From positions 62,001 to 126,000 of the IMG/VR virus record IMGVR_UViG_3300030041_000009: 64,000 nucleotides of DNA. The stretch is one strand, 5' to 3'. The notes beneath the pieces were generated by a model. It saw only the letters and a list, made by a program, of their open reading frames with translations. It made no database searches and had not been told where the DNA came from. A program made the position numbers and the translations under genes. Below, piece after piece: positions 18,276 to 43,612 of this stretch. Each line of letters opens with the position of its first letter. Positions within the stretch are counted from its first letter, which is position 1.

Positions 18276-18638
18276 GAAAAAAAAATTGTAATTGATAAAA
18301 AGAATTATAAATTTAAGTTGTTTTTAGATGATATTTTAGTATCTGAATCTAGTTTTAGAATAGAACATCCAGATAAATGGTTTAATGAAAAATATGTAAC
18401 TATTCATGATTTAAAAACGGTTAAAAATTTTCAAGGAAAAGGGTATGCTAAATATCTATTAGAACAGATATTTAATTATGTTAAAAATGAACTTAAAATT
18501 AATATTATTACTTTACTTGTTTATAAAAATAATTATAAAGCAGTAAATTTATATTTAAAATGCGGATTTGAAATATATCAAGATTATGATGATAATAAAA
18601 ATCAATCTTTTATACTTATAAAAAAATTAAAAATATGA
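18276..18638 (+). pseudogene. 3' part of GNAT acetyltransferase interrupted by IS607
   Basis: FQGKGYAK acetyl-CoA motif and N..AVNLY.K.GF; the ORF-track N-terminus is IS sequence. Confidence 0.8.
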
Positions 18639-19018
18639 AAAATTTTATTGAATTTATAAATGAATCTAAAAAGAAGATAGAAGATGATTTTTTATATGAT
18701 CCAGAATTGACAAAAAAACTTAAATATACAATAGATTGCGCTGAAAAATATAAGAAATGTTATTTTTGGCATAGCGCATCAAATTCTAAACAAAGGACGA
18801 ATAATGAAATTCATTTTACCAGAAATTATCCAGATTATAAATTTGAATATAACGGTGATAAATATGAAGTAAGTTTTAATTATAGTGAATCATCAAATAA
18901 TATTAGATTTTCATTAGATATATATAAAAATGATAATAAATCTAATTTAACTGTTATAAAAAATATTTATAATAAACTTAATAAACTTGAAACAGATATA
19001 AACAAATTTAATTTATGA
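18635..19018 (+). CDS. CTS-like/FNL-tagged hypothetical protein
   Basis: MKNFIEFINE...KFNL. Confidence 0.6.
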   Translation: MKNFIEFINESKKKIEDDFLYDPELTKKLKYTIDCAEKYKKCYFWHSASNSKQRTNNEIHFTRNYPDYKFEYNGDKYEVSFNYSESSNNIRFSLDIYKNDNKSNLTVIKNIYNKLNKLETDINKFNL

Positions 19019-19287
19019 AATATATTAAGAAATTTGAAATGATTGAAAATAAAAATTATAAAGAAGGTGAATATATTTTAGTTAATATTTATTTTGATCC
19101 ACATCATAGAGTTGATAAAAAATCAAAAATAATAAAAAATAACTTTGACTCTACAACATCATATAAAATATTATATGATGATAATAAAACTGATACTGTT
19201 CTTTTTTATAAAATAATTAGATATTTAACTACAGATGAAATAGATGAATTTGAATCTAATATAAATGCAATTAAATTTAATTTATAA
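19015..19287 (+). CDS. CTS-like/FNL-tagged small protein
   Basis: MKYIKKFE...KFNL. Confidence 0.6.
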   Translation: MKYIKKFEMIENKNYKEGEYILVNIYFDPHHRVDKKSKIIKNNFDSTTSYKILYDDNKTDTVLFYKIIRYLTTDEIDEFESNINAIKFNL

Positions 19288-19316
19288 AAAAAGAACCTCA
19301 ATATAAGGTTCTTTTT
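19286..19316. terminator. Bidirectional terminator
   Basis: aaaaagaacct...aggttcttttt between convergent genes. Confidence 0.75.
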
Positions 19317-19347
19317 AATATTATATTACAAAGATACAAAATTATTT

Positions 19348-19833
19348 TTAATTTTCAATCATTTTTTTAATATCTTTAGATAAATAATATCTAATTTTTT
19401 TATCTTTAATTTTAAATTCGTAAACTTCAAATTTTTTAATTTGCTGTAACGCATTATTAATGAAATTATTCAAATCTACTATAGCATCAGTAAACACTGG
19501 ATCTGAATCCCAATAATCAGGAAATCTTTTCTTATAACTTTCTAATTCATTTTCTACTATTCTAACAGATAAATAAACATTTTTATCAAAAATATTTGAT
19601 TTTATACTTATCATCTCTTTCATATGAACAATAAACCTATGTACTAAATTATCTGTCTCTATTGTTTTTAGTAATCCTATTGCATATGCATCATTTTCTG
19701 AAATGACGATTGGCTTATTTTCTTTTACAATTTCTTGAATCTCTTGCTCATTTTTATCTTTAAGTACAAATCTTTTGTAGTCACTCCATAAGCAACGTCT
19801 AAAAATATCATCAATCGTTAATGTTATTATCAT
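19348..19833 (-). CDS. Hypothetical protein
   Basis: ORF only. Confidence 0.55.
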   Translation of the reverse strand: MIITLTIDDIFRRCLWSDYKRFVLKDKNEQEIQEIVKENKPIVISENDAYAIGLLKTIETDNLVHRFIVHMKEMISIKSNIFDKNVYLSVRIVENELESYKKRFPDYWDSDPVFTDAIVDLNNFINNALQQIKKFEVYEFKIKDKKIRYYLSKDIKKMIEN

Positions 19834-19930
19834 ATTATATTTATATTTTTTTTATTATTAAGTTATATGATAATTATTATTTTTTGTTTATTTTTTTTAA
19901 TATATAATTAAAAAATAAATCATTCATAAT

Positions 19931-20752
19931 ATGAAAACATACTTGCAATATATCAAAGAAGCTAAAATGAATCAACTCATACAACCAAGTGATGAAGATG
20001 TTTTAGAAGCTGAAAAAATATTAGAAGAAGGAAAAGATAAAAAATTGACAATTAGAGATGTAGGCTGCTTTTATATAGATGTATCTGGAAAATACTCCGT
20101 TTATTATACTTTTTGGAGATGGAATCCAAGAAGTGCATCATGCTATTATATTTGTAATTTAAGTACTGACTTTACGACAGCAGTTAAAAAAGCTGCTAAA
20201 GCTTCTGGTCAAATTCCAGTTATTATAGATAGATTTGGTACATATGCTGGATTATTTCAAGCAGAAAAAAATAAAATATTAAAATTTGGAAAACATCGTG
20301 GAGAAACAATAGGTGAAGTATTCGTAGATGATCCTCAATATGTTGTTTGGTTATCTAAAGGATTTCAAGGAAATGAAGATATGGCGAATGAAATTGAAAA
20401 ATATAAAAATCTATTCTTTGAAACATTAACCAAAAAAAATCAAGAAGAAAGTATAAGTAAATATGTTGGTGAGATTGGAAGTAAAATTACAATAAAAGCT
20501 GATGTTTATAATTTTAAAATCCAAAACACTGAATTTGGCACTCAATATACTTGTAAATTAATAGATGAAGAAGGTAATAGATATATGACTTATAATATTG
20601 GTAGAATAGTAGAAAAAGGTGATACTATATATATGACAGCAAAAGTTAAAGATCATAAAGAAATAGTAGGTATTAAATTTACAGTTATATATTATTGTAA
20701 AATATCTAATGTTTTTAATTTAGAAAAAGATGCAGCAAATTTTAATATGTAA
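19931..20752 (+). CDS. CTS-like/FNM-tagged protein with FGKH.G (DUF3820-like) motif and C-terminal OB-fold
   Basis: MKTYLQYIKEA; LKFGKHRGETIGEV...P.YVVWL; OB-like strands; ends NFNM. Confidence 0.6.
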   Translation: MKTYLQYIKEAKMNQLIQPSDEDVLEAEKILEEGKDKKLTIRDVGCFYIDVSGKYSVYYTFWRWNPRSASCYYICNLSTDFTTAVKKAAKASGQIPVIIDRFGTYAGLFQAEKNKILKFGKHRGETIGEVFVDDPQYVVWLSKGFQGNEDMANEIEKYKNLFFETLTKKNQEESISKYVGEIGSKITIKADVYNFKIQNTEFGTQYTCKLIDEEGNRYMTYNIGRIVEKGDTIYMTAKVKDHKEIVGIKFTVIYYCKISNVFNLEKDAANFNM

Positions 20753-20755
20753 ATT

Positions 20756-21466
20756 ATGAAATACATCAAAAAATTAAATGAATTCAATATATCTGATATA
20801 GGTAAAAACAAATCCTTTGGGTTTGATTTCTCCCCTAGACGTGGAACATTAAATATACTTCATAATAATGAATTATATTCATTTTATTGGCATGAAGCAT
20901 ATAGTGAGATTATAGATTATCTTGAAAGTAACACAATAATTAATAATCCAATGAAACTTTTAGGTAATATAATTGATTATGTTAATAGTATCACAAGTGA
21001 TATCACAAAATCTAATCAAATAATGACAAATAAAAAACAAATAATTAAATCTAATTTATCATATGAAGATTTATTAATAATAAATTCTATATATTCTTTA
21101 TCTACTAATTTTTGGTTAAATTGGGATACAGATTATGCAAAATATACAATTAAATTTATAAATGATAATTTTAAAAATAAATTACCATCATTAAGTAATA
21201 TATTATTTTTAGATAAAATGATATTTTATTATAATGGATATAAATTAGATTTAAATACTAAAAAGTGGACTCCATCAAAAGATATAGATGTTTCAAATAA
21301 AATTTCAGCAAAAAATATTATAAATATTTTTATGACATATAATTTTCAAAAACAATATTTAAAGAATAATTCATTTCTAATTAATAATATTCCTGATGAA
21401 ATATTAGATGATAATATAAGAATAGAATATGACTACATATTAAAGTCAAATAATTTCAATATATAA
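20756..21466 (+). CDS. CTS-like/FNI-tagged hypothetical protein
   Basis: MKYIKKLNE...NFNI. Confidence 0.6.
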   Translation: MKYIKKLNEFNISDIGKNKSFGFDFSPRRGTLNILHNNELYSFYWHEAYSEIIDYLESNTIINNPMKLLGNIIDYVNSITSDITKSNQIMTNKKQIIKSNLSYEDLLIINSIYSLSTNFWLNWDTDYAKYTIKFINDNFKNKLPSLSNILFLDKMIFYYNGYKLDLNTKKWTPSKDIDVSNKISAKNIINIFMTYNFQKQYLKNNSFLINNIPDEILDDNIRIEYDYILKSNNFNI

Positions 21467-21468
21467 TT

Positions 21469-21499
21469 AAAAAGACTGTCATTATGACAGTCTTTTTTT
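21469..21499. terminator. Bidirectional terminator
   Basis: aaaaagactgtca-tta-tgacagtcttttt. Confidence 0.85.
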
Positions 21500-21914
21500 A
21501 TATTTTTATATAACCTTTACCAGTAAATTTTAATTTTTCATTTCTATTTTTAACATTTGAGTAACTAACATGTACCCATTCGAAATTTTTTTCATTTATA
21601 ATCTGATCAAATTTGAAATTGCTAACTATTAAATTAAAAAGTTTTTCATTTTCTTCTGGACTACCACCTGTAATATCTGCTGCTTGACCAAATACATGCT
21701 GACTATTGATGAACCCTTTAATTTCTCTATTAACTATCGGAGAACGATATCCACTATTTATATGAATTTGATTACCATATAATTCCCTTAATGGATCAAG
21801 TATATTCTTAACTAATAATACTAAATTATCTTGCTCTGGCTTCATTGGTAAATTATTTAATCCTGTTGAAGTTACAGTTAATTCCGATAAACTAAAATAT
21901 TTTCCAAGTTTCAT
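21498..21914 (-). CDS. Peptidase M15A (Zn D-Ala-D-Ala carboxypeptidase-like), possible endolysin
   Basis: YFSLSEL, INSGYRS..N, SQH..GQAADI, WVHVS. Confidence 0.85.
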   Translation of the reverse strand: MKLGKYFSLSELTVTSTGLNNLPMKPEQDNLVLLVKNILDPLRELYGNQIHINSGYRSPIVNREIKGFINSQHVFGQAADITGGSPEENEKLFNLIVSNFKFDQIINEKNFEWVHVSYSNVKNRNEKLKFTGKGYIKI

Positions 21915-21954
21915 ATTTTCTTTTTTATTATATATAAAAAAATATAAAAAGTTT

Positions 21955-22401
21955 TTATGCCTTTCTCTTTCTTTTTAAAATCACACCAATATTACCATAA
22001 TTTTCAGCATCAAATCCAGTTAACCATTCTAATTCATGCTCAATTATAACATATTTTCCTAATTTACTTCTCCATATATTTTCATACTGTTTAGATGCAT
22101 GATTTACATTATTAGAATTATCAACATAAAGTGCTACTTTTTCATATTCAAATTCATACTCATCATTATCACATATATTATATCCATATAAATTATAATA
22201 TTTAATATAATTATTTAATTTTGAACTACGCGGTAATATATTATAAGGCCAAGATTTTTCTGATGCGCCACACCATTCATCAAATATATCTAAACTATAT
22301 GCAAAACAATTAAAAACAATTAAATTATAATTTATATTTATAATTTTATAATTTTTACCTATCAATTTAGGATGCCAAATTTCAATATTATTTATATCCA
22401 T
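21955..22401 (-). CDS. Papain-like Cys-His protein (DUF7689-like)
   Basis: NCFAYS...HA...WRSKLG..IEH. Confidence 0.55.
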   Translation of the reverse strand: MDINNIEIWHPKLIGKNYKIININYNLIVFNCFAYSLDIFDEWCGASEKSWPYNILPRSSKLNNYIKYYNLYGYNICDNDEYEFEYEKVALYVDNSNNVNHASKQYENIWRSKLGKYVIIEHELEWLTGFDAENYGNIGVILKRKRKA

Positions 22402-22699
22402 TTTCTATACCCCATTTTTTCCAAGAATTCATAATATCAATTGATTTAATTGATTCTTTGTCAGGCTCGTCCCCAGTTATTCTACGTAATGCTTCAAACC
22501 AAAACATACTCTCATCTATTCTATTTAATAATGAAGGTATTGATTTTTCACCATATTCTATAATTTTAATATATGATGGATGAGAATATATTTTTTCTAA
22601 TACTGAACAATTACCTTTTTGATTTTCTAAATCATCAATTAATTTTTCTATAACTAATAAATCATTATTAATAAATTCATTAAATTTATTTATTTCCAT
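22388..22699 (-). CDS. HEAT-like helical protein, partner of the Cys-His gene
   Basis: HPSY.KII..G...IP.LL...WF.AL..ITG..P...W.KWG. Confidence 0.5.
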   Translation of the reverse strand: MEINKFNEFINNDLLVIEKLIDDLENQKGNCSVLEKIYSHPSYIKIIEYGEKSIPSLLNRIDESMFWFEALRRITGDEPDKESIKSIDIMNSWKKWGIENGYK

Positions 22700-22800
22700 T
22701 TTAATTTTTTATTTATATATTAAATATTAGTGATTATAATTAAAATAAACAAAACTTAATTATTTTTATATAAATATATGATAATAAAATAAAATAATAA

Positions 22801-23769
22801 ATGATAATAAGTAAAACTGTTAATATTAGAATTAGTACAAGCAACAAAGATCATTTTGAAAAATTAGGATATAAAGTAAAATTAAATGAATATATTGAAG
22901 TTAACGTTTGTCATTTAAAACCGAATTCAAAAGTTATTATTGATGTAGAATGCGATGTTTGTCATAGAAAAACTCAAATTAGATATGATGTTTATATGAG
23001 AAAATCTATATTTTCATGTAGTTATAAATGCGCTGCAAAATTGTATTTCGCTAAAAGTCAGGAAACATTTATTGCACAATTAAATGAAGTATATAAAAAT
23101 AATCTTGATTTTTCAAAGAGTGTATATGTTAATAATCATACTTGTGTTATTGTAGAATGCGAAAAACACGGAGAATTTAAAATGTTACCGAAAGATTTAA
23201 TTGACGGAAGAGGCTGCATAAAATGTAATAAAGAAAAAAGAATAGAAAAAAGATATAAAAAATTCGTTTCTGAAGCAAAAATATTACACAACAATAAATA
23301 TACTTATCCAAATTATTCAGATTCTAATTATATTGACTCAAGCACGAAGCTAGTAATTAGTTGTCCTATACATGGCGATTTTAAACAAACTTCATCTCAT
23401 CATTTATTATTGTGTGGTTGTCAAAAATGTAGTAATACAAGTAAAAGATTAAAAAGATTAAAAAGATTAAGTGATGATAAATTTGATGGAAATCAAGTAT
23501 TTCCATCATATAATAAAAAAGGTTGTGATATTTTTGATGAAATATCAAAGAATGAAAATATTCATATTCAACATGCAATGAATGAGGGAGAATATCATAT
23601 TGAAGAACTTGGTTATTGGATAGATGGATATGATGCTATAAATAATGTAGTATATGAGTATGACGAAAAACATCATTTTATAAAAGGTGAATTAAGACAA
23701 AAAGATCTTGATAGGCAAAAAGAAATTGAAAATTTTTTAAATTGCAAATTTATAAGAATTAAAGATTAA
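22801..23769 (+). CDS. Free-standing homing endonuclease (Zn-ribbon/DUF723-like repeats + PD-(D/E)XK nuclease)
   Basis: CDVC, C.KHG.F and CPIHG.F repeats; IDGYD...VYEYDEKHH...D..R...I...L.C.FIRI. Confidence 0.75.
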   Translation: MIISKTVNIRISTSNKDHFEKLGYKVKLNEYIEVNVCHLKPNSKVIIDVECDVCHRKTQIRYDVYMRKSIFSCSYKCAAKLYFAKSQETFIAQLNEVYKNNLDFSKSVYVNNHTCVIVECEKHGEFKMLPKDLIDGRGCIKCNKEKRIEKRYKKFVSEAKILHNNKYTYPNYSDSNYIDSSTKLVISCPIHGDFKQTSSHHLLLCGCQKCSNTSKRLKRLKRLSDDKFDGNQVFPSYNKKGCDIFDEISKNENIHIQHAMNEGEYHIEELGYWIDGYDAINNVVYEYDEKHHFIKGELRQKDLDRQKEIENFLNCKFIRIKD

Positions 23770-25332
23770 TTATAATTTGACCTTTAATTCATCATAAGGA
23801 TATTGTTGTTTTTTATATACTTCATCTCTTCTAGATTCATATTGTTTCCATAATATTGTTTTATAGTCAGGATGAAAAATGTCTACCAAATCAAATACGA
23901 TTAATTTTGTTTTTTCTTTGTGTAATCTTAGACCTCTCCCTATTGCTTGCCTTATTATTTTAGGCTCTTTATAAGAATCCGCAAAGATAATATTTGTTAT
24001 TGCTTTAACACTTACGCCGACAGAAAATACTCCGAAAGATGCTAAAAGTATTTTAGGATTACCTGAAGTATCTTCTAATTTTTTCTTGATATATTCTCTT
24101 TTTTCTGTAGATGTTGTACCGTCAATATAGAACACATCTTTACCAATGCAATTATCTTTGATATAATTATATAATTCTGTTCCATAAGTAATAGTATGAA
24201 ATAATATAAGAGAATTAGATTTAAATTTATCTGTTAAATTTTTAATAAATGTTTTTCTTTTTGCTGAATTATGTACGTATTCACGTTCTAAAATCCATGC
24301 ACGTTGACCGTCAGTTTTTTTTATATTATTAACTCCTTCTGCAAATTTATGATTATCATGATGTAACATGATAACTTTTATTTTAAGATCTGATATTAAT
24401 CCTTTATCTATTAATTTTCTAGCACTAATATTTATTAATTTAGGACCCATTAAAGATTGAATTGTTAATATTTCTATTGAAGAATCCGAAGGATAAGATC
24501 CACTCATTCCGAATCGTAATTTTGCAACTCCAAACGTTTTTGTTAAAATAGTTTGAATGGTAATAGCTTTTGCAGTATGTGCTTCATCACATGCTACAAC
24601 TTCAAATTGGTCAAAAAATGTTTTAGGATATTTTTCTAATGATTGATAAGTTCCAATGTATATATTTGGTATTTTTTCACCATCTCTATATTTTCTTGGT
24701 TTATCACTCATAACTTCATCAATTCTAATATCAATAGGGTTTTTATTATCATTATTAAAACCGTAATTATAATCATTAAGATCATTATAAAATTGAGTAA
24801 CTAAACTTATACTTGGGACAATCAATAAAAATTTAGCATTTGTATTTATATTTTTTAAATAATAAAATAGTAATGTGCCAAATACCAATGATTTACCTCC
24901 AGCAGTAGCAATTTCAATTAATCCATATTGATGTTTTAATAATTGAAATATTGCATCTACTTGATGTTCATATGGCATAAAAGGTTTACCATCAGGAGTT
25001 TTATGATCTTTATAAAATTCAGTCACAAAATCTTGTACATTTTCTCTTAATATATCTTTATTACGTGGAAATTGTTCTTGATTTTCAATTATAAATTTAT
25101 AACCATACTCTTTACAACATTTATATATTTCTTGCCATAATCCAAAGTCAATTGATCCACCTGGATTTCCAAAATAACTTATACTTCCATCCCATACACC
25201 AAGCTTGAACCTTTTCATAAAACGGTAGTTATGAACTTTTCTGGTTAGATATAGTTTAAGTTGGTTATATTCTCCTTTGGTTGATTCTGTTAAAATTAAC
25301 TTTGAATTGTCTTTATTTAATTTAAATTTCAT
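23770..25332 (-). CDS. uvsW: UvsW-like SF2 DNA helicase
   Basis: WDG.I N-domain, ATAGGKS, DEAH, SGS, QAIGRGLR; next to uvsY. Confidence 0.88.
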   Translation of the reverse strand: MKFKLNKDNSKLILTESTKGEYNQLKLYLTRKVHNYRFMKRFKLGVWDGSISYFGNPGGSIDFGLWQEIYKCCKEYGYKFIIENQEQFPRNKDILRENVQDFVTEFYKDHKTPDGKPFMPYEHQVDAIFQLLKHQYGLIEIATAGGKSLVFGTLLFYYLKNINTNAKFLLIVPSISLVTQFYNDLNDYNYGFNNDNKNPIDIRIDEVMSDKPRKYRDGEKIPNIYIGTYQSLEKYPKTFFDQFEVVACDEAHTAKAITIQTILTKTFGVAKLRFGMSGSYPSDSSIEILTIQSLMGPKLINISARKLIDKGLISDLKIKVIMLHHDNHKFAEGVNNIKKTDGQRAWILEREYVHNSAKRKTFIKNLTDKFKSNSLILFHTITYGTELYNYIKDNCIGKDVFYIDGTTSTEKREYIKKKLEDTSGNPKILLASFGVFSVGVSVKAITNIIFADSYKEPKIIRQAIGRGLRLHKEKTKLIVFDLVDIFHPDYKTILWKQYESRRDEVYKKQQYPYDELKVKL

Positions 25333-25495
25333 GTAATGCCTTTAATTTTTCTTTTCTTAAAATTTTATTTGCTTTATCGTAATATGATTTAAAATTATTT
25401 TTATTTTTAATAAAAAAATCTTTTTTACAATAATACTTTGGAGTAAATCCTAAGTAGTTTATTAATAATTTATATGCTAAATTATTTAGTTCCAT
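25322..25495 (-). CDS. 57-aa RKxKL-tagged protein, tandem paralog of 25482..25664 (not in ORF track)
   Basis: MELNNLAYKLL...KSYYDKANKILRKEKLKALHEI. Confidence 0.7.
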   Translation of the reverse strand: MELNNLAYKLLINYLGFTPKYYCKKDFFIKNKNNFKSYYDKANKILRKEKLKALHEI

Positions 25496-25664
25496 ATGAT
25501 TTTAATGTCTTTAATTTTTCTTTTCTTAGAATTTTATTTGCTTTATCGTAATATGATTTATATCTATTTTTATTTTTCATAAAAATATTAATTTTAAAAT
25601 CCTGAATTGAAATAAATCCAAATTTTTCTATAAATAATTTATATGCCAAATCATCTAATTTCAT
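25482..25664 (-). CDS. Small RKxKL-tagged protein
   Basis: ...KSYYDKANKILRKEKLKTL. Confidence 0.65.
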   Translation of the reverse strand: MKLDDLAYKLFIEKFGFISIQDFKINIFMKNKNRYKSYYDKANKILRKEKLKTLKSYGTK

Positions 25665-25884
25665 TTAATAAAAATAATTTCTTTTTTCTAATTTGTTTTA
25701 AACAAACAATATTTATATGGTTTTTAATAGTATTATCTAATAAATCAAATGATAGTTTGTCAGAATTATAAATATATTTTGAGTCATCGAAATGTATTAT
25801 TGTAATTTTTGGGCTATTCATTCCTTCTGCTATTATAAAATCTGATTTTATTTCAAATTTTTTAATATAATTATTAGTTATCAT
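25651..25884 (-). CDS. Small RKxKL-tagged protein
   Basis: Ends IRKKKLFLLNEIR. Confidence 0.55.
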   Translation of the reverse strand: MITNNYIKKFEIKSDFIIAEGMNSPKITIIHFDDSKYIYNSDKLSFDLLDNTIKNHINIVCLKQIRKKKLFLLNEIR

Positions 25885-26342
25885 TATTTGTAACCTCCTA
25901 ATATATTAGCCAGTTCAATTTTAGATTTAACTGAATAGTTTATAGATTCTAGATTTTTAGAAGTATCTCTTAAAAAATTTACATGTTCATCTAGTTCATT
26001 TATAAAGCATTGATGTTCTGATAAATCTGCTTCGATAAGTCTTAATTTTTCTGTTCCAGACGTTTTAACTTGATATGATGTTGCATAGAATTCAAATCTT
26101 TCTTTTGTTAGAACTTTTGTTTTTTGAACCAGTTTATGTATTTTAACGCTATAATTTTTAATTTCTTCGACTACAATTTGTCGTTGACTTATAGCTTCTG
26201 CCTGAATATCTGCAATATTTTTTAGATCGTCGTTAATTAATCTATTAGTTAATTTATTAACAATAGCGATCCATTGTTTTGTAGATTCTATCATTTTTTT
26301 TTGAAATTTTTGTCTTGAGTCTAGTTCAATGTTTTCTGACAT
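25884..26342 (-). CDS. uvsY: UvsY-like recombination mediator
   Basis: Helical, about 150 aa; RFEFY...IEADL...FL....K.L....Y.VK..IE; adjacent to uvsW as in T4-like phages. Confidence 0.65.
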   Translation of the reverse strand: MSENIELDSRQKFQKKMIESTKQWIAIVNKLTNRLINDDLKNIADIQAEAISQRQIVVEEIKNYSVKIHKLVQKTKVLTKERFEFYATSYQVKTSGTEKLRLIEADLSEHQCFINELDEHVNFLRDTSKNLESINYSVKSKIELANILGGYK

Positions 26343-26389
26343 AGTTGTAGAATGAGTTTATTTTATATATAATATAAATAGAAGTTAGT

Positions 26390-27124
26390 TTAAATTTTTG
26401 CAAAATTAATATCAAAATAATAGTTAAAATTATATTGATTAGATGGTTTACTTTGATTATATAATATTGACACAGAATTAAAATTATAAGGATCATAATT
26501 TTGTATACTTATATTTGTCAAATTTGCTGTTTGATATACATCTGGATTAAATATTGGATTATATTGTAGAACAATATTATTATAAATAGTTTGATCTGTA
26601 ATGCTATAGTAGTTTACATAAAATTGTATAGAATCTAATTTATATCTATTAAAAATATTCTGATTTATATATTCATATATTGCGTTATTAATATCATTAG
26701 AATATATATCATTTTGTCTTATTATTTTAAATACTCTTTGTTCTTTAATTTTAAAGAATAAATAATCTTTTAATATTTGTGCTCCGTTAATATTTATTAG
26801 CCATCTGGTATTATTATTTTTATCTGATTGTGTTTGACTATATTGTGAAATTACTTGATTATTTTGTTTTAAATCTGATAAATTTTCATTGAATGTAATT
26901 TCCCAATCATCGGGTATTGTAGTTATATCATAGTATTGGTATCCGTTATTACCATTGATAGTATTGTTAACAATTTGACTAAATTTTATAGCGTCGTCGT
27001 TAATATAGATTTCATCTTCGGTATATATTATTTTACCTCCAAAAAAAGTTCTTAATTCTGTTTGATTCATTGTACCTGGCACAGAGTTTACAGAAAATTT
27101 TTTTAATATTAAATTACTTTTCAC
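26390..27124 (-). CDS. Putative structural protein
   Basis: N/Q/Y-rich ORF in an operon with large structural genes. Confidence 0.5.
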   Translation of the reverse strand: MKSNLILKKFSVNSVPGTMNQTELRTFFGGKIIYTEDEIYINDDAIKFSQIVNNTINGNNGYQYYDITTIPDDWEITFNENLSDLKQNNQVISQYSQTQSDKNNNTRWLININGAQILKDYLFFKIKEQRVFKIIRQNDIYSNDINNAIYEYINQNIFNRYKLDSIQFYVNYYSITDQTIYNNIVLQYNPIFNPDVYQTANLTNISIQNYDPYNFNSVSILYNQSKPSNQYNFNYYFDINFAKI

Positions 27125-27139
27125 TATTTATTATTTTTT

Positions 27140-27532
27140 TTATATATTAAATTTATTTACATCAAATTCGAAATCAGGTATATTTATATTTCCCATAAAT
27201 TTATATCCTTTTTTTTCATAAAAATCTTCAGTATTTTTATTCCAATTAACTTTATAGTTCCAGCCCCAACAAAGACTAACATCGTCATCTACAGTTTTAG
27301 TTGGATTATATCCAACAAATACATAATTATATTGTCTCATATTTTTATTACCTAAAAATTGTTCTATTTTAAAATCAGGACATTTTATTTGTTTTAAAGA
27401 ATCTTCAAATCTATCATCAGTTGGTAATAACCAATAGCATCTACTATCATATATATTTTCATATATATTTTCATATATATTTTCATATATATTTTCATAT
27501 ATATTTTCTTCAAACATTTTTATATATTTCAT
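27140..27532 (-). CDS. CTS-like/FNI-tagged protein with YENI repeat (probable start 27532)
   Basis: MKYIKMFE..YWLLPTDDRFE..KFNI; paralog of 27537. Confidence 0.65.
   Translation of the reverse strand: MKYIKMFEENIYENIYENIYENIYENIYDSRCYWLLPTDDRFEDSLKQIKCPDFKIEQFLGNKNMRQYNYVFVGYNPTKTVDDDVSLCWGWNYKVNWNKNTEDFYEKKGYKFMGNINIPDFEFDVNKFNI
27447..27506. repeat. 12-bp tandem repeat tcatatatattt x5
   Basis: Five perfect copies encoding ENIY repeats. Confidence 0.95.
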
Positions 27533-27536
27533 ATAG

Positions 27537-27854
27537 TTATATGTTAAATTTATCAGCAATTAATTCTAATTCATTCATATTTATATGTCCACCAAATTTA
27601 TAATTATTTTCTTCAAGATAATCGTCAAGTAATTTACCTTTATATGAATTCCATTCCCATTGTTTATTATATGGTGAATAACAAATGAATACATATTTAA
27701 TATTTTTAATTCTATTATTATTTAAAAAAAATTTAATATTATTATTAGGACATTTTATTTGTTTTAAAGATTTTTCAAATCTATCATCAGTCGGCAATAA
27801 CCAATATGTTGGTTCATTATATAATTCATTTTCAAAAGTTTTAATATATTTCAT
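27537..27854 (-). CDS. CTS-like/FNI-tagged protein
   Basis: MKYIKTFE..YWLLPTDDRFE..KFNI. Confidence 0.65.
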   Translation of the reverse strand: MKYIKTFENELYNEPTYWLLPTDDRFEKSLKQIKCPNNNIKFFLNNNRIKNIKYVFICYSPYNKQWEWNSYKGKLLDDYLEENNYKFGGHINMNELELIADKFNI

Positions 27855-31288: not shown

Positions 31289-31308
31289 AATTTTTTAATA
31301 TTTTATAT

Positions 31309-34300: not shown

Positions 34301-34494
34301 TCATTTTTCAATTGTCCAACAGTTGGAAATTGATATGATGATGTTGTACCATCAGAATTCATTAAGTTAACGTTAATAACAGAATTTCTACTAGTTACGA
34401 CATCATTTAATTTTGTCATAACTTCCGTAGAATTTTTATTTAATACAGCTAGTTGTTCAGCTAATGATACAAAACTATTTTGTTGATTTATCAT
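31309..34494 (-). CDS. Large putative virion protein with central coiled coil, 1061 aa
   Basis: Size, Q-rich heptads, promoter-like motif upstream. Confidence 0.55.
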   Translation of the reverse strand: MINQQNSFVSLAEQLAVLNKNSTEVMTKLNDVVTSRNSVINVNLMNSDGTTSSYQFPTVGQLKNELDIANRNIQKLAGLADSTAYVSDGTTMRRIYVDDLNSEPSPIDSLDTINNFTSINNSFFESLCDPILAIELDLTDKIDQKVKKVLSRRYIIEFQKDQYGNLTSDGANSKSDFENNFLNRNDIFIDDLTAWYTNTKNNGVFQRNEPYDEQIFDLDYDSLQYYGIFDVVGIDNDTINNKMWYVLGSITYYDYTGNTKQLSVGDELIINKKDSSTLWTINEVSTAKSNYRVILERVEGLDPVPILSQGLKIYSPVLPARTIKISIGYDEYNVIFIKPINTDSNVISSTWSYGTSFYTNNLVLDTNSTVSMTRYYSDNVFDYGAILKDLIAKNIPSQFGVIPNVPNLTATNFKVLQTNTHLTNTADSAKIQSLNVQKVSINSQLEQLNDAIIEQNKELSTKQYKSTSDKQASQTTLNNLINQQSSLTKSYTSIVNQITAQNTGAISDVEAEFSVRGFWSVPEPIIINTVGENQKQEVVQFIVQYRYSATGGSAPTTVGFDLNLTENIYTNYISTGDIVDQTKAYQNPSVSTQSVTETGYFSNWYQFTTDARTRTYNSALNVWTWDIEDVTDANIKKVNQLDIPLHPNETVDIRIKSISEVGYPDALITSDWSNIMTIDFPDDLAQVGNENATILQSAQNDQIYNQIESDFNSKGLTAHLQQSYYVNDLYVAHTDINLGTSFKDSSGNMIMLSDYLTSLTNRILALEQIVSNAKGELSISLYQNTNSVIIQNGASITQKIVCEKYAELSGTTTRTYYNSTYSTNDYYLEFDNLSQSSQLGLLSYRKYVPTISGDNRFYNPIYSNGSLATYVDSNDNLQTQVDNQFVWISDTSGNNAIYNSGVTYDANGLGQVLYSKNWNIGLTGTTVPNSGGTYSTPINIFNDINWTGGTWIADNNYETDFPVTIHPYIDNINDYVYADKSGVELINANSKFILPIKIFFKLSGGTNDSITFPTNLSTSPYVIRKLRIFIESESLTRPFEFEIIFKIFRNNTSSNRSSTAS

Positions 34495-34587
34495 GTTTAA
34501 TAATTTAATTTTTATCTATATATAAAAAAAATCTATTTCATTCGAAATAAAATTCATGCAAGATCATGATATATACTATATATAATA

Positions 34588-35370
34588 TTATATATTAAAT
34601 TTATTAACATTTATTGCCACATCTTCAGCATTTTTGAAATATTTTTTTAGTTCTTTTGGTACCCCGTATTGAGCTAACATTATATCTTTATCTAATGAAT
34701 CTTTAATTATATCAAAAAATCCTTCGTCTTTAGATTTTAATCTTTTGTAAAAATTTTTTATATGTTCAATAATAGGATAATATTTTATCATTAGATTATA
34801 ATTACATTCTTTTGTATCTCTCACCATGTTTTTACCATGCATATCGTGATCTCCTGATGTTCCTCCTATAAAATATTGAAATTCTCCATATTTATTTTCA
34901 AGAACTCCACCAAGTCTTTTTATAAGTATTGTCATAGCATACATCCTTTCATATCTTACAGTTATATTAGTATTAATATTTCTAGATTTATAATAACCTT
35001 TATCATCTTTTTCATTATTATAAAAATCAATTTGTTCTTGATTGATATAATCACGAACTCCTTTATTTTTATAAAGTTTATTTAATTTTGCATATGTTGG
35101 AGTCATTAATTTTGCCATATCATCTGATATGTATAATATATCTCCACTTAAATAAAAAGGTTGTTGTTTAATAATATTAATATTTTCAGATAAATAATTC
35201 ATTTTTTTATGTCTTTCAGGTATTGATTCGCCTTCTTTCCATATATCATTAATATTTCCACAATTTGGACATTTAACTATTTTGGTCATAGGTAACCAGC
35301 CTATCCATCCACATTCAAGACAATGATATTCAACTTCTAATTTTGTTTCAAAATATTTTAAGTATTTCAT
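34588..35370 (-). CDS. CTS-like/FNI-tagged protein with N-terminal Zn ribbon
   Basis: MKYLKYFE, CLECG..CPNCG, ends KFNI. Confidence 0.6.
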   Translation of the reverse strand: MKYLKYFETKLEVEYHCLECGWIGWLPMTKIVKCPNCGNINDIWKEGESIPERHKKMNYLSENINIIKQQPFYLSGDILYISDDMAKLMTPTYAKLNKLYKNKGVRDYINQEQIDFYNNEKDDKGYYKSRNINTNITVRYERMYAMTILIKRLGGVLENKYGEFQYFIGGTSGDHDMHGKNMVRDTKECNYNLMIKYYPIIEHIKNFYKRLKSKDEGFFDIIKDSLDKDIMLAQYGVPKELKKYFKNAEDVAINVNKFNI

Positions 35371-35714
35371 AAATTAAATTGTTTAGATTTTGATATTTCA
35401 GGATGCTCTTTATCTAACCATTTTTTATATTCAATTAGATTATTATAAGGTAATTTAGTGTTATAGCAACGTAATTCAGTCATAGTTTCTGGTAATATAG
35501 GTAACTCAGATAAATTATGATTATGAGAACATTTTAAATGTTTCAAATTAGGAGGTAATTTTTTAATTTTAGTTAAAAAATTATTATTACAATATAAAGT
35601 AATTAAACTATCTGGTAATTCAGGTAATTCAGTTAAATTATCTCCAGAGCAATCAATAGTAGTTATATTATTGATTCCTTTTGATATTGATTCAAATGTT
35701 TTAATATATTTCAT
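35367..35714 (-). CDS. CTS-like/FNL-tagged leucine-rich-repeat protein
   Basis: LTELPELPDSLITLYCNNN / LSELPILP bacterial-type LRRs; ends QFNL. Confidence 0.75.
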   Translation of the reverse strand: MKYIKTFESISKGINNITTIDCSGDNLTELPELPDSLITLYCNNNFLTKIKKLPPNLKHLKCSHNHNLSELPILPETMTELRCYNTKLPYNNLIEYKKWLDKEHPEISKSKQFNL

Positions 35715-36049
35715 AAGTTAAATTTCTTTATATTACGTTGTATTTCAGCTTCTTCTTTCACAGTTTCTTTGTTTTTACCAAATGCTAAAATAGAATTCAT
35801 TGGAAAAATCTTTATATGATCAGGATTAAAATGAGTATTTAGATTCTTTGGTATATTAAAAAATTTGATTTTAATACCTTTTCCGTTATATACATTTCCA
35901 AATCCAACAACTTTGCCAATATTATTATTCAAAAAATAAAAAATATCATCATAACTTGGACCTAGTATATTATTAAGTTTATCTATAATAATATAATCCC
36001 CAATTTCAGGATTATTATTAATATTTTCAAATCTTTTTAAATATTTCAT
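35711..36049 (-). CDS. CTS-like/FNL-tagged small protein
   Basis: MKYLKRFE..IGDYII..KFNL. Confidence 0.6.
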   Translation of the reverse strand: MKYLKRFENINNNPEIGDYIIIDKLNNILGPSYDDIFYFLNNNIGKVVGFGNVYNGKGIKIKFFNIPKNLNTHFNPDHIKIFPMNSILAFGKNKETVKEEAEIQRNIKKFNL

Positions 36050-36309
36050 ATGTTAAATTTATTTGATATATTATCTAATTCATATTTTTCAATTTCTTTT
36101 TTAGATAATTTTCTTTTTATGTCCTTATATTCTAAAAAATGAATATCTCCATTTACTCCAATAACGTTATATGGATAATATGCATTTTTTACAATATCAA
36201 CAATTTTAAATATTTTACTAGTTCCTACATATATATTATTATGAACAATTATATAATCATCAATATTATATTCTTTTTCCTTATTTTCAAATCTTTTTAA
36301 GTATTTCAT
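36046..36309 (-). CDS. CTS-like/FNI-tagged small protein
   Basis: MKYLKRFE..KFNI. Confidence 0.6.
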   Translation of the reverse strand: MKYLKRFENKEKEYNIDDYIIVHNNIYVGTSKIFKIVDIVKNAYYPYNVIGVNGDIHFLEYKDIKRKLSKKEIEKYELDNISNKFNI

Positions 36310-37004
36310 TTCACTATCAATATAAATTTTATTGGATCGCCTTCATCATCAACGCTACATTCAACTTTGTTTCTCCACATTTTTTTAGAAGCCCAATTAT
36401 CTAATGATCTGAATGGACGATTCATATTTATATCATCATCAGTGAATTGATCTCTTGTTATATAAATAATCACTTTATTGTCTGATATTTCTACTTTTGT
36501 TTTCTTCTTACCTTTGTAAAATTGTTCACAATCTTGTTTTATCTTTGATAGTATTGGTAATTTTTTAGCATCAGTATTCTGTATTATTTTATTAACAAAC
36601 TGCATAGATTTATATTTAGATATTGATCCAAAAAATTCTTTAGTAAATATAAATTCTCCAACAACATAACTCCTTTGTGTATCTAAATCTAAAAATCCAT
36701 ATCTTAATGTAGAATTTTCTTTTATACCAAAAAAGAATGCTAATTTATTATCTTTTATTTGTAATAATATTTCATATGCTGATGCTAATGAGTGTTTATA
36801 TTTAAAAATATCTACATAATCTTCTATTCCTGTTATAGTTTCAGTTGAAAAAAATACATGATATTTGTATAATTTTCTATATGTATCATTCGAAATAAAA
36901 TGATAATCATGATTTGAAACTATCTGCAAATAAGTTAAAAATGAATTCTTTCCAGATAATTCATATGTTTCATTTAATGTATATTTTTTAAAATTTGTTA
37001 TCAT
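36306..37004 (-). CDS. Hypothetical protein (probable start MITNFKKYTLNE)
   Basis: ORF; CTS-like leader. Confidence 0.55.
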   Translation of the reverse strand: MITNFKKYTLNETYELSGKNSFLTYLQIVSNHDYHFISNDTYRKLYKYHVFFSTETITGIEDYVDIFKYKHSLASAYEILLQIKDNKLAFFFGIKENSTLRYGFLDLDTQRSYVVGEFIFTKEFFGSISKYKSMQFVNKIIQNTDAKKLPILSKIKQDCEQFYKGKKKTKVEISDNKVIIYITRDQFTDDDINMNRPFRSLDNWASKKMWRNKVECSVDDEGDPIKFILIVK

Positions 37005-37347
37005 AATTAAATTGTTCAAATGTTTTTATGTGTTTATTCTCGCCCATTAAAGTATTAGGCACATTCTGTGAATCCGTTTGATTGAATACATTATTTTTAG
37101 TTTGAACTTTAAATTTATCATAAAGAATTTTAGCAATTTTATTAATATCTAAATCATTCATTGTTGCTTGATCGATGTAATTACTTATCTCACTTTTAAT
37201 TTCATCAGATTGATTGAAAATTTCATCATTAAATGTTTGCACATCACTTTTCTTTATTTCTTTATCTTGAGAAATTAATCTTTTGATTTCTTCTTGAACT
37301 AAATCAAAATATTTTTTTACTAAATCTTCATTTCTTGTATCTATCAT
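36988..37347 (-). CDS. Hypothetical protein with CTS-like HIKTFEQF near its C-terminus
   Basis: ORF; promoter-like motif upstream. Confidence 0.55.
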   Translation of the reverse strand: MIDTRNEDLVKKYFDLVQEEIKRLISQDKEIKKSDVQTFNDEIFNQSDEIKSEISNYIDQATMNDLDINKIAKILYDKFKVQTKNNVFNQTDSQNVPNTLMGENKHIKTFEQFNYDNKF

Positions 37348-37437
37348 AATAGATGTTTTTTCTTTATATATAAATAAAAAAAAACTTAAAACTATTTTTA
37401 TAATAGAACATCTAATAAAATAACGTTATATGAAAAT

Positions 37438-38565
37438 ATGAAAATTTTAATTGTGCTATCATTGCTAATTTCTTTTTTATTTATAATATCATTATTATAT
37501 TTTTTAATAAATATAGTATATTTTGAATATATAAAAAGAAGGAATTTTATAATTCTAAAAAAAAATATTGTAATATTAAATAAAAGAATAAAAAAATTAA
37601 AAAATAAAATAAATGAATTACCTGATGAATTATTAATAAAATATAATGATTCAATCTATGATAAAATAACTAAGATTGATGTGAATATAAATGTTTATAT
37701 CAAATTGAAAAATATGTATAAATCATTAATTGAATATAAACAAATTGTTAATAGTATAGATGATTCAATATATTTAATATCAAAAAGTAAATCTGATATT
37801 GAAATTTATATGCAAACTAATTATCCAAATTGTGAAAAATATATCAAATCTGAATTAAATAATCTTACCGTAGATATTAATATGAATGATAATGAGTATA
37901 CAATTAATAGAATGAAGAAGTTAATTAAAGAAAAAAACTTATTAGATAATAAATTGAATAAATCTTTAACTAAAATTGTTAAAATTAATAATATTGTTAT
38001 AGATTATCAAAACATTAATAAAAAAATTGATGAATTAACGAAAATAGATATCATATGCTATAATGATAAAAAAATATTAGAACATGCTAAAGTTGGTAAT
38101 AGATATCATAATCTTAGTAATATAAATCTTGATTATTATGCTGATAAAATGAAAAATGATTTGAATAGTAGTTTAAAATTATTAAATGATGAAGATTTTG
38201 ATAATGCTATATTATATTATGGTAATTATGTAACATGTATGTCTTTATTAAATAAATCATTTAATTGCGTAATAAATTTATTAAAAGATTATAATAATAG
38301 TAATAATTATATTAAATCTAATAGTAAAGACATAATTAATCTAACAAGCAAAATTGAAGAAAAAATATTTAAATTAGGAGTTAAAATTTGTAATAGAAAT
38401 CTATATTCAGAATATAAAAATGATATATTAATTTATAAAAAATTTTTAAATTTTGATATTATTTCTGCTGCAGAAAAACATAAAGAAATTATTAAGAATC
38501 TTGAAAAATTATTAAATGATATTGATAATAATATTATAAGTTATTATAAAAATAAAAAAGTGTAG
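37438..38565 (+). CDS. N-terminally membrane-anchored coiled-coil protein
   Basis: Hydrophobic residues 3-28 followed by helical K/N/I-rich sequence. Confidence 0.55.
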   Translation: MKILIVLSLLISFLFIISLLYFLINIVYFEYIKRRNFIILKKNIVILNKRIKKLKNKINELPDELLIKYNDSIYDKITKIDVNINVYIKLKNMYKSLIEYKQIVNSIDDSIYLISKSKSDIEIYMQTNYPNCEKYIKSELNNLTVDINMNDNEYTINRMKKLIKEKNLLDNKLNKSLTKIVKINNIVIDYQNINKKIDELTKIDIICYNDKKILEHAKVGNRYHNLSNINLDYYADKMKNDLNSSLKLLNDEDFDNAILYYGNYVTCMSLLNKSFNCVINLLKDYNNSNNYIKSNSKDIINLTSKIEEKIFKLGVKICNRNLYSEYKNDILIYKKFLNFDIISAAEKHKEIIKNLEKLLNDIDNNIISYYKNKKV

Positions 38566-38581
38566 AAATTTCTACACTTTT
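38556..38581. terminator. Perfect 26-bp palindrome overlapping two convergent stop codons
   Basis: aaaagtgtagaaa|tttctacactttt. Confidence 0.65.
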
Positions 38582-39327
38582 GGATTTATTTTTTCAATTT
38601 TATTTTTATAGTATATAATATATGCATTATTAAAATAAAAATTTTTCATTAAATCTTTATAATAATAGTCTTTAATTTTAGTTAAATCTCCTCTAATACT
38701 AGCTGTATTATTTAGAAATAATTTTATTTCTATTTTACCAATATTCTGCCAATCGCCAGTTCTATGTTTTATCTCAATACATTTTTCATTAAATATTAAT
38801 TCGTAAAAACTTTCAAAATTATCATAATCATCTTTAAAATTTATTTTTATTGAGTTTTTATCTAAATTATAAACATCTACATTTAGATAATTTTTATTGA
38901 ATTTGAAATCTTTATCAATAAGATTATATTTATTTTTGAATTTGAACCAATCAATGACAGTATTTATACTTTCACAGTTATTTTCAGGAGGTTTACCTCT
39001 ATCATCATATTTTAATGAAAAAATATTTTTTATAAATTCATTAATTTTATCATCAGGATTAAATTTAGAAAAATGATTCATCACTTCTTTTTCAACTTCT
39101 GAATAATTTTTTATATCATAAAGATTACGATAAAAATTATCAGGTATATCTAATTTTAATGTATTGTATTTTTGTACAATTTTTTGAATTTTATTTTGGT
39201 GATAATCATCTCTTCTACTTATATATCCAAATCCTTGATCATATATAGCATCAAATACTTTATTTAAATCAGATTCTGATTTAATTTGAGGCATTTTGAA
39301 TTCTTCTTTTTCTTTATTATTTTCCAT
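38572..39327 (-). CDS. Hypothetical protein
   Basis: ORF. Confidence 0.55.
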   Translation of the reverse strand: MENNKEKEEFKMPQIKSESDLNKVFDAIYDQGFGYISRRDDYHQNKIQKIVQKYNTLKLDIPDNFYRNLYDIKNYSEVEKEVMNHFSKFNPDDKINEFIKNIFSLKYDDRGKPPENNCESINTVIDWFKFKNKYNLIDKDFKFNKNYLNVDVYNLDKNSIKINFKDDYDNFESFYELIFNEKCIEIKHRTGDWQNIGKIEIKLFLNNTASIRGDLTKIKDYYYKDLMKNFYFNNAYIIYYKNKIEKINPKV

Positions 39328-39380
39328 TAAATTTGAATTTCATTTTTTTATATATATTAAAAAAAGAATATCAATTTTTT

Positions 39381-39776
39381 ATGTTAAACAAATATTTAGA
39401 TTTTATAAATGAAAATTTTAATATAGCTGAAGGTTATGTAAGTCATCCAACTGTTATATACTGGAATGAAAATGTAAATGATGTATTAAATGATGAGTGG
39501 TTTGATATATCAGTTAGTAGATATGGTTATCCTATATATATTATTAAATTTAGAATTGGAAATGATAAAAATGATACTCATAATTATTATCAAGCAGTAC
39601 TTGAAAATAAAGGATCAAATGATATTTATTATATGGAAAATCCTGAACCTTTTATTGCTAAATTTAAAACAGAATTTTCAAAAAATTCGTTAGAATATAT
39701 AAATAATATGAAATATGATCCAAAAGCACTAGGTGATTTGAGTTCTATTAGAGCATCAGCAAAATTTAATTTATAA
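39381..39776 (+). CDS. CTS-like/FNL-tagged protein (probable start 39381)
   Basis: MLNKYLDFINE...KFNL. Confidence 0.6.
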   Translation: MLNKYLDFINENFNIAEGYVSHPTVIYWNENVNDVLNDEWFDISVSRYGYPIYIIKFRIGNDKNDTHNYYQAVLENKGSNDIYYMENPEPFIAKFKTEFSKNSLEYINNMKYDPKALGDLSSIRASAKFNL

Positions 39777-43603: not shown

Positions 43604-43612
43604 ATTTTTTAA

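Follow-up and report, generated by a model that had tools for sequence, protein, structure and literature searches.

Paired terminal peptides on diverse small proteins of a predicted uncultured huge phage: a T4-like leader and a strict C-terminal tail

The internal proteins of phage T4 are diverse defence proteins whose sole common part is the capsid-targeting sequence (CTS) at their N-terminus (PMC3012670), and CTS propeptides, 10-20 residues in length, are cut off by gp21 (PMC5694885). For the phiKZ-like phages, the propeptides of head-internal proteins are thought to target the prohead and are cut after Glu by a gp21-related protease, with a T-F-E site reported in 201phi2-1 (PMC5694885). 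Here we describe a related-looking arrangement in a 64-kb stretch of the IMG/VR virus record IMGVR_UViG_3300030041_000009 (positions 62,001 to 126,000; the whole stretch is called the window below), where eleven open reading frames (ORFs) combine a CTS-like N-terminal leader with a short, strictly conserved C-terminal tail, together referred to as the tags. Gene calls were simple longest-ATG ORFs, and genes are named by their leftmost position in the window.

The eleven ORFs listed in a preliminary description of the window were all recovered in place, with leaders of the reported type and ends of the form (K/N/Q)-F-N-(I/L/M)-stop; the starts of two were corrected, gene 27140 beginning at ATG 27532 and gene 39381 at its ATG and not at the upstream TTG. 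They make up 11 of the 84 genes of the window (13%, about one in eight). Amino-acid composition predicts 0.08 C-termini of the FN[ILM] type among the 84 ORFs, and 2000 residue shuffles gave a mean of 0.09 and a maximum of 2, against the 11 observed; leader-like starts number 16 versus 1.4 expected. As had been reported, every FN[ILM] protein of the window has the leader (11/11) and none of them has an RKxKL tail, and a co-occurrence test of both motifs gave Fisher p=2.4e-10, so that independence of the two was not seen. The leader of gene 18635 is identical at 7 of 10 positions to MKTYQEFIAE, with which T4 ipII and ipIII start, and that of gene 19931 is of the same type, in agreement with its initial assignment. 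The common leader M-K-Y-I-K-x-F fits the pattern M-K-x-phi-K-x-F (phi, hydrophobic) of T4 ipI, which starts MKTFKEF. These N-terminal peptides of about 10 residues agree with the CTS consensus.

To place the window among related viruses, IMG/VR was scanned for the DNA of the tail-to-leader junction, which yielded at least 120 loci on viral contigs of up to 330 kb. A set of 940 distinct ORFs of at least 60 residues was then compiled from these loci, about 1 Mb of related viral contigs; this set, and all counts for related loci given below, apply among the matches listed. The tail proved to be broader than first noted, K-[FY]-N-[ILMV]-COOH, and occurs on 335 of the 940 ORFs, a share (36%) that overstates the genome-wide proportion of tagged genes because the loci were picked by the junction pattern, the window standing at its lower value. 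A leader variant is recognizable in 307 of the 335 C-tagged proteins (92%), and of the 28 that are left most begin with a degenerate leader of the MK[YH]I type. Of the remaining 605 proteins, 77 have a leader without the C-tag; under a looser definition of leader and tail, Fisher p is about 1e-117. The dependence is one-way, as the C-tag almost never occurs without the leader, whereas the leader alone occurs in the clade and is also present, without any C-tag, in other huge phages. Many loci hold 3-10 junctions, and up to 10 tagged genes can follow one another on the same strand, usually overlapping as ATGA. When 596 Gb of bacterial genomes were searched with the junction pattern, 113 single, chance-like matches were obtained, with no arrays and no clue to the host. 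A conserved 175-residue protein encoded near the portal gene of another huge-phage clade (L435-L475, e.g. L448:1100-1627), and recurring close to capsid genes outside the tagged clade, ends in HLKKFN[LV], and its LR745206 homolog in KMFSV; being one orthologous family that has no leader, it was judged coincidental.

With clusters weighted equally, the N-terminal logo reads M-K(0.79)-Y(0.65)-[IL](0.77)-K(0.80)-x-[FY](0.79)-E(0.83), and then comes a polar segment with many N, D, E, K and S residues, so that Glu ends the leader in 83%. The C-terminal logo reads L(-10)...[ATS](-6)-[NKD](-5)-K(0.99)-[FY](1.0)-N(1.0)-[ILVM]-COOH, with Lys at position -4 in 99%. Leader variants include MKxYxxFIxE, MITNFKxYE and MKIKRFNE, which are mixed within single contigs and interchanged among orthologs of 19931. 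In the type-A leaders, and in most orthologs of 19931, phi-x-E precedes A, S or N. Genome-specific co-variation of the tag variants, which would be a sign of receptor co-evolution, was looked for and not seen; the F/Y alternatives and the leader classes mix within contigs. In gene 27140 a five-fold ENIY repeat stands directly after the leader (27445-27510, minus strand; MKYIKMFE-ENIYENIYENIYENIYENIYD), and each I-Y-E of the repeat would match the phi-x-E protease-site pattern.

Selection on the tags acts at the peptide level and not at the nucleotide level, because synonymous codons vary freely. The tail Asn is encoded by AAT in 182 cases and by AAC in 153, the Phe by TTT in 241 and TTC in 47, and the last codon is ATA (163), TTA (123), CTA (18) or another; leader codons vary too (TAT/TAC, ATA/ATT/TTA/TTG, GAA/GAG). 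These counts bear on the alternative that the tags are nucleic-acid signals, the tail serving as a promoter or coupling element, the leader as an initiation enhancer and the junction as a cassette-shuffling site. Such a role is suggested by F-N-I-stop being the exact frame-2 reading of a promoter-like 13-mer, TTTTAATATATAA, by the 56% of C-tagged genes that overlap the next start as ATGA, and by the junction of about 25 nucleotides that is common to tandem arrays. We nevertheless regard it as very unlikely and largely refuted by codon variation, since the spelling AAT-ATA-TAA is found in only 25 of the 335 tails (7%), 46% of the tails contain AAC, which disrupts the motif, 42% close with TTA or CTA, and the exchanges F/Y and I/L/V/M are conservative for a peptide but not for DNA. 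In addition, the invariant Lys codon AAA at -4 clashes with the T-run of the motif, a downstream overlap is absent for 44% of C-tagged genes, some of which are followed by terminator-like hairpins, and 81 tagged genes start within 10 nucleotides of, or overlap, an untagged same-strand upstream gene, to which they are coupled without a tail. Neither the nucleotide conservation nor the dependence on a downstream gene that an embedded promoter or translational coupling implies was observed. Examples of F-N-I-stop tail codons in the window lie at 27140-27154 and 34588-34602. The use of AAC for the tail Asn exceeds that in gene bodies (46% vs 11%) and is commoner before ATA than before TTA (p=0.012), either because spurious promoter-like sequence is avoided, perhaps, or because accurate decoding is selected for.

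The payloads between the tags had been called mostly unrelated, and this holds because, with the ends trimmed, 27140 and 27537 are the only pair among the eleven whose cores are related by BLAST. Among the payload types originally named, the leucine-rich repeat (LRR) of gene 35367 was confirmed by Pfam, gene 35711 was assigned an SH3/Tudor-like barrel, and the Zn ribbon gave a weak match (E ~0.03). For the related loci, 277 both-tagged proteins (looser definition) with trimmed ends fell into 83 BLAST core clusters among the matches listed, the largest being a small barrel (99 members), ankyrin repeats (25), LRR (18) and the 27140/27537 family (12). Pfam matches to the cores were to Ank, LRR and a methyltransferase, most cores having no match; the folds include SH3/Tudor-like barrel, ankyrin, LRR, OB-like and Zn-ribbon-like ones. 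The tagged proteins have a median length of 116 residues and are soluble and mildly acidic. In the 19931 family, about 90 orthologs retain both tags and distant homologs lack both.

Two AlphaFold2 models built on deep alignments, those of 35711 and 19931, represent unrelated folds. The 35711 model (predicted local distance difference test, pLDDT, 84) has a barrel that resembles Tudor, chromo and SH3-like domains; residues 1-9 fall below 50, and the tail ends a long C-terminal helix at lower confidence. For 19931 (pLDDT 82), the leader forms a short helix of low confidence, a disordered linker comes next, and the tail stands behind a short terminal helix. The tags are thus predicted to be exposed, flexible linear motifs and not a packed clasp, because their ends are flexible in both models, and the general build is leader, flexible linker, payload, C-terminal helix and tail. 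It is extremely improbable that all tagged proteins form a single fast-evolving family whose conserved termini pack together to close the fold. Even though paralogs in tandem arrays and a largest core cluster of 99 members would suit such a family, the cores are not homologous (LRR, ankyrin, SH3-like, OB-like and Zn-ribbon-like), the N-tag has a pLDDT below 50-55 and is unpacked in either model, and untagged homologs of one payload, 19931, exist.

The window is judged to be a fragment of an uncultured huge phage, because of its gene content, of conserved proteins whose relatives are found solely in huge phages, and of the recurrence of its genes in public assemblies, where the contigs reach 346-434 kb. 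Its G+C content is about 22%, and its products include tail-fibre proteins, two helicases (one of the UvsW type), a glycosyltransferase and an M15 peptidase. The conserved proteins, of 1061 and 1144 residues, have relatives in LR756501 (735 kb), LR745206, Lak phages, Sphingomonas phage PAU and Tenacibaculum phage PTm1, and a protein of 827 residues resembles the 'neck protein' of PTm1. The standard genetic code is used, with TAA at 69, TGA at 11 and TAG at 4 stops; an alternative code was ruled out, as stop usage is standard and the TGA stops are mostly ATGA overlaps. In megablast against deposited phages, no near-identical or DNA-level relative of the window was found. A tblastn search of the same phages with the barrel family of 35711 gave no match, and one with 19931 gave only untagged partial homologs (27-35% identity) in nine records of rhizobial and Tunturiibacter phages.

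Gene content of the relatives points to a T4-type head. In PTm1, the genes for the neck, DNA-end protector, portal, 'prohead core scaffolding protein and protease' and major capsid protein adjoin the homolog of the 1144-residue protein, and the protease matches T4 gene 21 products. In Lak phages, LR756501, LR745206 and L295, the last being an AT-rich sister genome (24% G+C) that shares genes of about 47% identity with the tagged loci, the portal, a fused S77 protease/scaffold and a Gp23-family capsid gene stand in a row. As part of the explanation that we favor, in which our confidence is evenly divided, the window phage would belong to a lineage with a T4-type head. Adjoining tagged arrays are genes for proteins of 244-284 residues (L040:734-1588, L107:3052-3906, L026:3384-4118) that show homology to the Gp23-type capsid protein in its C-terminal half (tblastn E down to 3e-13).

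A strict leader pattern, M-[KR]-x-phi-[KRQE]-x-[FY], selects 4 of 277 ORFs in the reassembled T4 genome, namely ipI, ipII, ipIII and gp61.1, and 7 of 960 (0.7%) in loci around gp21 genes of T4-like phages, as against 39 of 917 (4.3%) in huge-phage capsid loci and 270 of 940 (29%) in the tagged clade among the matches listed. The 54-residue gp61.1 (T4 18966-19130, minus strand; gene 61.1, locus L296) starts MKTFKEFIKED and, judged by this start, may be an unrecognised CTS-bearing protein. When 113 huge-phage capsid loci were scored for leader-bearing proteins, such genes made up 30 of 233 (13%) of those within 4 kb downstream of the capsid gene on its strand and 65 of 1189 (5.5%) of those elsewhere (p=1.4e-4), counts that include orthologs and hence are not fully independent; within 4 kb upstream there were 0 of 234. 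The gene directly after the capsid gene often encodes, in many huge-phage loci, a leader-bearing NFACT-R protein, such as the one of about 128 residues at L448:11786-12169 (NFACT-R RNA-binding domain, PF05670, 1.5e-17; leader MKYLKYFESKK), and the next gene there (L448:12186-13721) encodes a 511-residue peptidase (phrog_4191) with a leader-like start.

The distribution of the leader also bears on a different explanation, by which the tagged proteins are made late but left unpackaged, both peptides docking to some other phage or host machine such as a chaperone or hub, or the N-tag of one chain pairing with the C-tag of another in mixed chains. The flexible linear character of the tags in the models, the very large number of tagged species per genome, the resemblance of the D-type leader (K-R-F-N-E) to the tail K-F-N-I and the dependence of the C-tag on the N-tag would all be compatible with docking. 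We consider it unlikely, given that in T4 hardly any ORF other than those of the internal proteins has the leader pattern, that leader genes cluster by the capsid gene in relatives and that no candidate receptor was found.

Tagged operons have an upstream element in common with structural and lysis genes. A promoter-like motif, TTTTWATATATAR, has seven exact matches in the window, all intergenic and each directed at a gene start; the targets include the genes for a collagen-like fibre, the neck protein, the 1061-residue protein and the M15 endolysin as well as tagged gene 19931, and a one-mismatch copy also precedes the gene for a 2152-residue tail spike. The six-gene operon from 37347 to 34588, with a one-mismatch copy upstream, holds four tagged genes, and tagged genes 27537 and 27140 continue the transcription unit of the 1061- and 1144-residue proteins. 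The start of 27537 overlaps the stop of the 1144-residue gene, an overlap from which co-transcription of the two is probable, and the gene order is identical in independent assemblies. In the window, the motif was not found at the helicases, the glycosyltransferase or an array of genes with another tail class described below. Among the matches listed, it precedes 41 of 109 tagged operons (38%), 3 of 41 operons of that other class (7%) and 47 of 244 other operons (19%). It has two preferred positions in related loci, one of them 3-4 nucleotides before the ATG and restricted to tagged operons, which hints at leaderless or near-leaderless mRNAs. The T4 late promoter is TATAAATA, and by analogy we infer that TTTTWATATATAR is a late-type promoter. 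A generic sigma-70 promoter scan gave no excess over shuffles, and in one metatranscriptome run 7% of the sampled words were present.

A late class of genes is difficult to reconcile with the idea that the tags control degradation or stability, AAA+ or tail-specific proteases of the host recognizing them and limiting the proteins to a short, timed life. A hydrophobic phi-x-phi-COOH end and an exposed Met-basic-hydrophobic N-terminus may resemble recognition classes of bacterial proteases, and both ends are disordered in the models. There would, however, be no reason to make proteins of late structural operons merely for destruction; Lys(-4) and Asn(-2) are 99-100% conserved, far stricter than in known degrons, and the leader is common to the T4 internal proteins, which are stable cargo. 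A degradation signal is therefore improbable.

A second class of C-terminal tail (RK tail), with the motif R-K-x-K-[LI]-x-K-[LI]-N... placed some 20 residues or fewer from the end, was noted on 50 of the 940 proteins, as compared with 1 of 819 internal control segments. Among the matches listed, the RK and KFN tails stand together on 1 of 940 proteins, and the RK tail is almost confined to leaderless proteins; this second, mutually exclusive class strengthens the idea of terminal peptides as sorting labels. In the window it occurs at 59730-63631 (+), 25322-25664 (-), 43415-43804 (-) and 55724-56008 (-), and a tandem array comprises about 14 paralogs of about 90 residues each (GDKLLCKK...RKIKLEKLYEE). 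Examples in related loci are L040:734-1588, the 284-residue capsid-related protein mentioned above, and L020:11720-14512; the capsid-related protein of L026 ends in a related basic tail. Homology of the tagged barrel family to the RK-tail array was considered and rejected (hhalign probability 2.5%).

The preliminary description had proposed that the tagged proteins are head-packaged, injected effectors. The likeness to the CTS, the T4-type head module and capsid-adjacent leader genes of relatives, the shared promoter-like motif and the flexible ends support a link to the T4 CTS, and the proposal is thereby supported in part. Our confidence is evenly divided on whether the leader serves as a propeptide of the CTS type that targets proteins to the head, with the C-tag as a clade-specific second signal. 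In such a scheme, the leader would be the counterpart of the T4 CTS, inherited from T4-like ancestry and much expanded, and would dock late-made small proteins onto the scaffolding core during prohead assembly. A gp21-family protease would probably remove it after the conserved Glu, and the payload would stay inside the head and be delivered along with the DNA into the next host, as the hypervariable internal proteins of T4 are, where the mostly binder-type payloads (SH3/Tudor-like, ankyrin, LRR) would act as pre-made host-takeover or anti-defence proteins. The C-tag would be a later, clade-specific addition found only on leader-bearing proteins, and would therefore belong to the same pathway as the leader; our preferred guess is that it may provide a second docking contact, still available once the leader has been cut off. 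Observed directly were the motifs with their one-way linkage, the peptide-level selection, the flexible ends of the models, the attachment to unrelated folds, the shared promoter-like motif and the head module of the relatives; that the tagged proteins are packaged, cleaved and ejected and act as effectors is inferred.

Several points weigh against it. The commonest leader ends in K-x-F-E and not in the I/L-x-E of T4, which only the type-A leaders fit. The median isoelectric point of the tagged proteins is 5.7, in contrast to T4 IPII and IPIII, which are basic. The promoter-like motif (at most one mismatch) precedes only 38% of tagged operons, and its designation as late would follow from the kind of genes that it precedes and not from timing. 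The portal, protease and capsid genes of the tagged clade were not recovered: local tblastn with the head proteins of PTm1 and LR756501 did not find them, the matches of a protease-profile scan were swamped by T4-like phages, capsid-profile scans returned other huge-phage clades only, and a capsid homolog search led only to L295; its protease is accordingly taken from relatives. The protease/scaffold proteins of relatives end in TYDNI (Lak) or in RLQR, RFKSI and NLER, none of them KFN-like, and mimicry of the scaffold C-terminus by the C-tag is not supported. The megablast and the tblastn searches with 35711 and 19931 brought up no cultured or deposited phage with these tagged families, and a cargo of dozens of different protein species in each genome would have no known precedent among head-packaged proteins.

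A more elaborate form of the head-targeting scheme is two-signal cargo loading, which we offer tentatively, as a possibility on the doubtful side. The CTS-type leader would bring the protein to the prohead core, K-[FY]-N-phi-COOH would retain or position it by docking to shell, portal or scaffold once the leader is cut, as encapsulin cargo peptides do, and RKxKLxKL would specify another destination. The phage would thereby pack and inject dozens of different binder-type effectors, and terminal 'address labels' might be a general sorting principle in these phages.

Table 1. Tagged genes of the window and copies of the promoter-like motif
Feature	Position	Strand	Length (aa)	Leader	Tail	Remarks
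Tagged gene 18635	18635..19018	+	127	MKNFIEFINE (T4-CTS-like, type A)	NKFNL	
Tagged gene 19015	19015..19287	+	90	MKYIKKFE	IKFNL	Terminator-like hairpin 3' at 19288-19316
Tagged gene 19931	19931..20752	+	273	MKTYLQYIKE	ANFNM	ExoX-like_C and C-terminal beta-barrel
Tagged gene 20756	20756..21466	+	236	MKYIKKLNEF	NNFNI	Bidirectional terminator-like hairpin 3' at 21469-21497
Tagged gene 27140	27140..27532	-	130	MKYIKMFE + (ENIY)x5 repeat	NKFNI	Paralog of 27537
Tagged gene 27537	27537..27854	-	105	MKYIKTFE	DKFNI	
Tagged gene 34588	34588..35370	-	260	MKYLKYFE	NKFNI	CxxC...CxxC Zn-ribbon-like N-terminal part
Tagged gene 35367	35367..35714	-	115	MKYIKTFE	KQFNL	LRR payload (LRR_4, 1.3e-6; phrog_21719, 4e-13)
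Tagged gene 35711	35711..36049	-	112	MKYLKRFE	KKFNL	SH3/Tudor-like barrel, in largest payload family
Tagged gene 36046	36046..36309	-	87	MKYLKRFE	NKFNI	
Tagged gene 39381	39381..39776	+	131	M-LNKYLDFINE (type A, one-residue shift)	AKFNL	
Promoter-like motif, exact	8363-8375	-				
Promoter-like motif, exact	8390-8402	+				
Promoter-like motif, exact	13348-13360	+				
Promoter-like motif, exact (TTTTAATATATAA)	19895..19907	+				5' of tagged gene 19931
Promoter-like motif, exact	21928-21940	-				
Promoter-like motif, exact	34516..34528	-				5' of conserved 1061-aa and 1144-aa genes
Promoter-like motif, exact	45260-45272	+				
Promoter-like motif, 1 mismatch	37364..37376	-				5' of operon 37347 to 34588
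Promoter-like motif, 1 mismatch	39345..39357	+				5' of tagged gene 39381

Among the tagged genes of the window (Table 1), 18635 has a weak DUF4251 match and a stop that overlaps the next start as ATGA, 34588 is the last gene of its six-gene operon, and a hairpin with a T-run was seen by eye downstream of 39381. An ORF of 119 residues (36988-37347, minus strand) ends in ...NKHIKTFEQFNYDNKF, a leader-like peptide at its C-terminus, and overlaps the start of 36306-37004 (minus strand), which begins with the leader variant MITNFKKY and has no KFN tail; the gene calls of this pair match in an independent assembly (L001), and the pair may be what is left of a tagged gene after rearrangement. At 39806-40507 and 40518-41213 (both minus strand), two paralogs of about 232 residues start with the leader-like MI[DE]xYxEYVELIKE, and one of them ends in ...IIKHNI, possibly a diverged tail with His in place of Phe/Tyr. 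Directly 5' of a GNAT acetyltransferase and two tagged genes lies a pair (16008-18244, plus strand) of an IS607-family serine transposase (NF033518, 3e-45) and a 533-residue protein whose TnpB-related match is weak and does not reach the cut-off (TIGR01766, 1.7e-6); the start of a second ORF, of 548 residues (49908-51554, plus strand), resembles that of the 533-residue protein and has no family match.

If the head-targeting scheme is true, the tagged proteins would be the largest known set of head-packaged, injected phage proteins and the first phage cargo with two signals, and a simple sequence rule would suffice to list what uncultured huge phages inject. The proteins so listed would likely serve in anti-defence or host takeover, with ankyrin, LRR and SH3-like binders as their scaffolds. 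The peptide pair is also a candidate protein-packaging tag, and the one-way dependence together with the exclusive second tail makes protein sorting in the infected cell directly testable. Even without packaging, a four-residue C-tag conserved on more than 300 distinct proteins from at least 83 unrelated core clusters demands a dedicated reader protein.

Compared with known systems, the nearest likeness is to IPI, IPII, IPIII and Alt of T4, in which a short M-K-x-phi-x-x-F...E N-terminus likewise stands on unrelated, hypervariable small proteins. The lineages agree in having gp20-, gp21- and gp23-type head genes, seen here in relatives, and the genes lie in plastic regions, with those for leader-bearing proteins of the huge-phage relatives beside head genes. 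The leader ends in Glu and is flexible in both, as predicted for the clade. On the other hand, T4 has three to five such proteins, whereas the tagged clade has dozens per genome in tandem arrays; nothing in T4 corresponds to the strict C-terminal peptide; the most frequent leader falls two residues short of the T4 CTS and lacks the I/L-x-E context; and packaging and cleavage are predictions for the clade. The inner-body and ejection proteins of phiKZ-like phages (SPN3US, phiKZ, 201phi2-1) are similar in being many, head-internal and equipped with N-terminal propeptides, but these propeptides are mostly 80-130 residues or longer, have no common short motif, are unaccompanied by a C-tag and belong to another lineage.

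For the tail, a search of the literature found no description of K-[FY]-N-phi or of a two-ended arrangement. Scaffolding proteins of P22 and herpesviruses use an amphipathic C-terminal helix and terminal residues to dock to the capsid shell during assembly; the protease/scaffold proteins of the huge-phage relatives differ in not ending in K-F-N-phi, and no homology was found. Encapsulin cargo peptides are short, flexible C-terminal peptides on unrelated cargo that bind the inside of an HK97-fold shell. The C-tag of the clade is analogous in being short, flexible, terminal and carried by unrelated proteins, but its sequence motif is another one and encapsulin cargo needs no N-terminal signal. 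The tail side of the arrangement is thus without a known counterpart, and the leader side is a very large new variant of the CTS cargo system.

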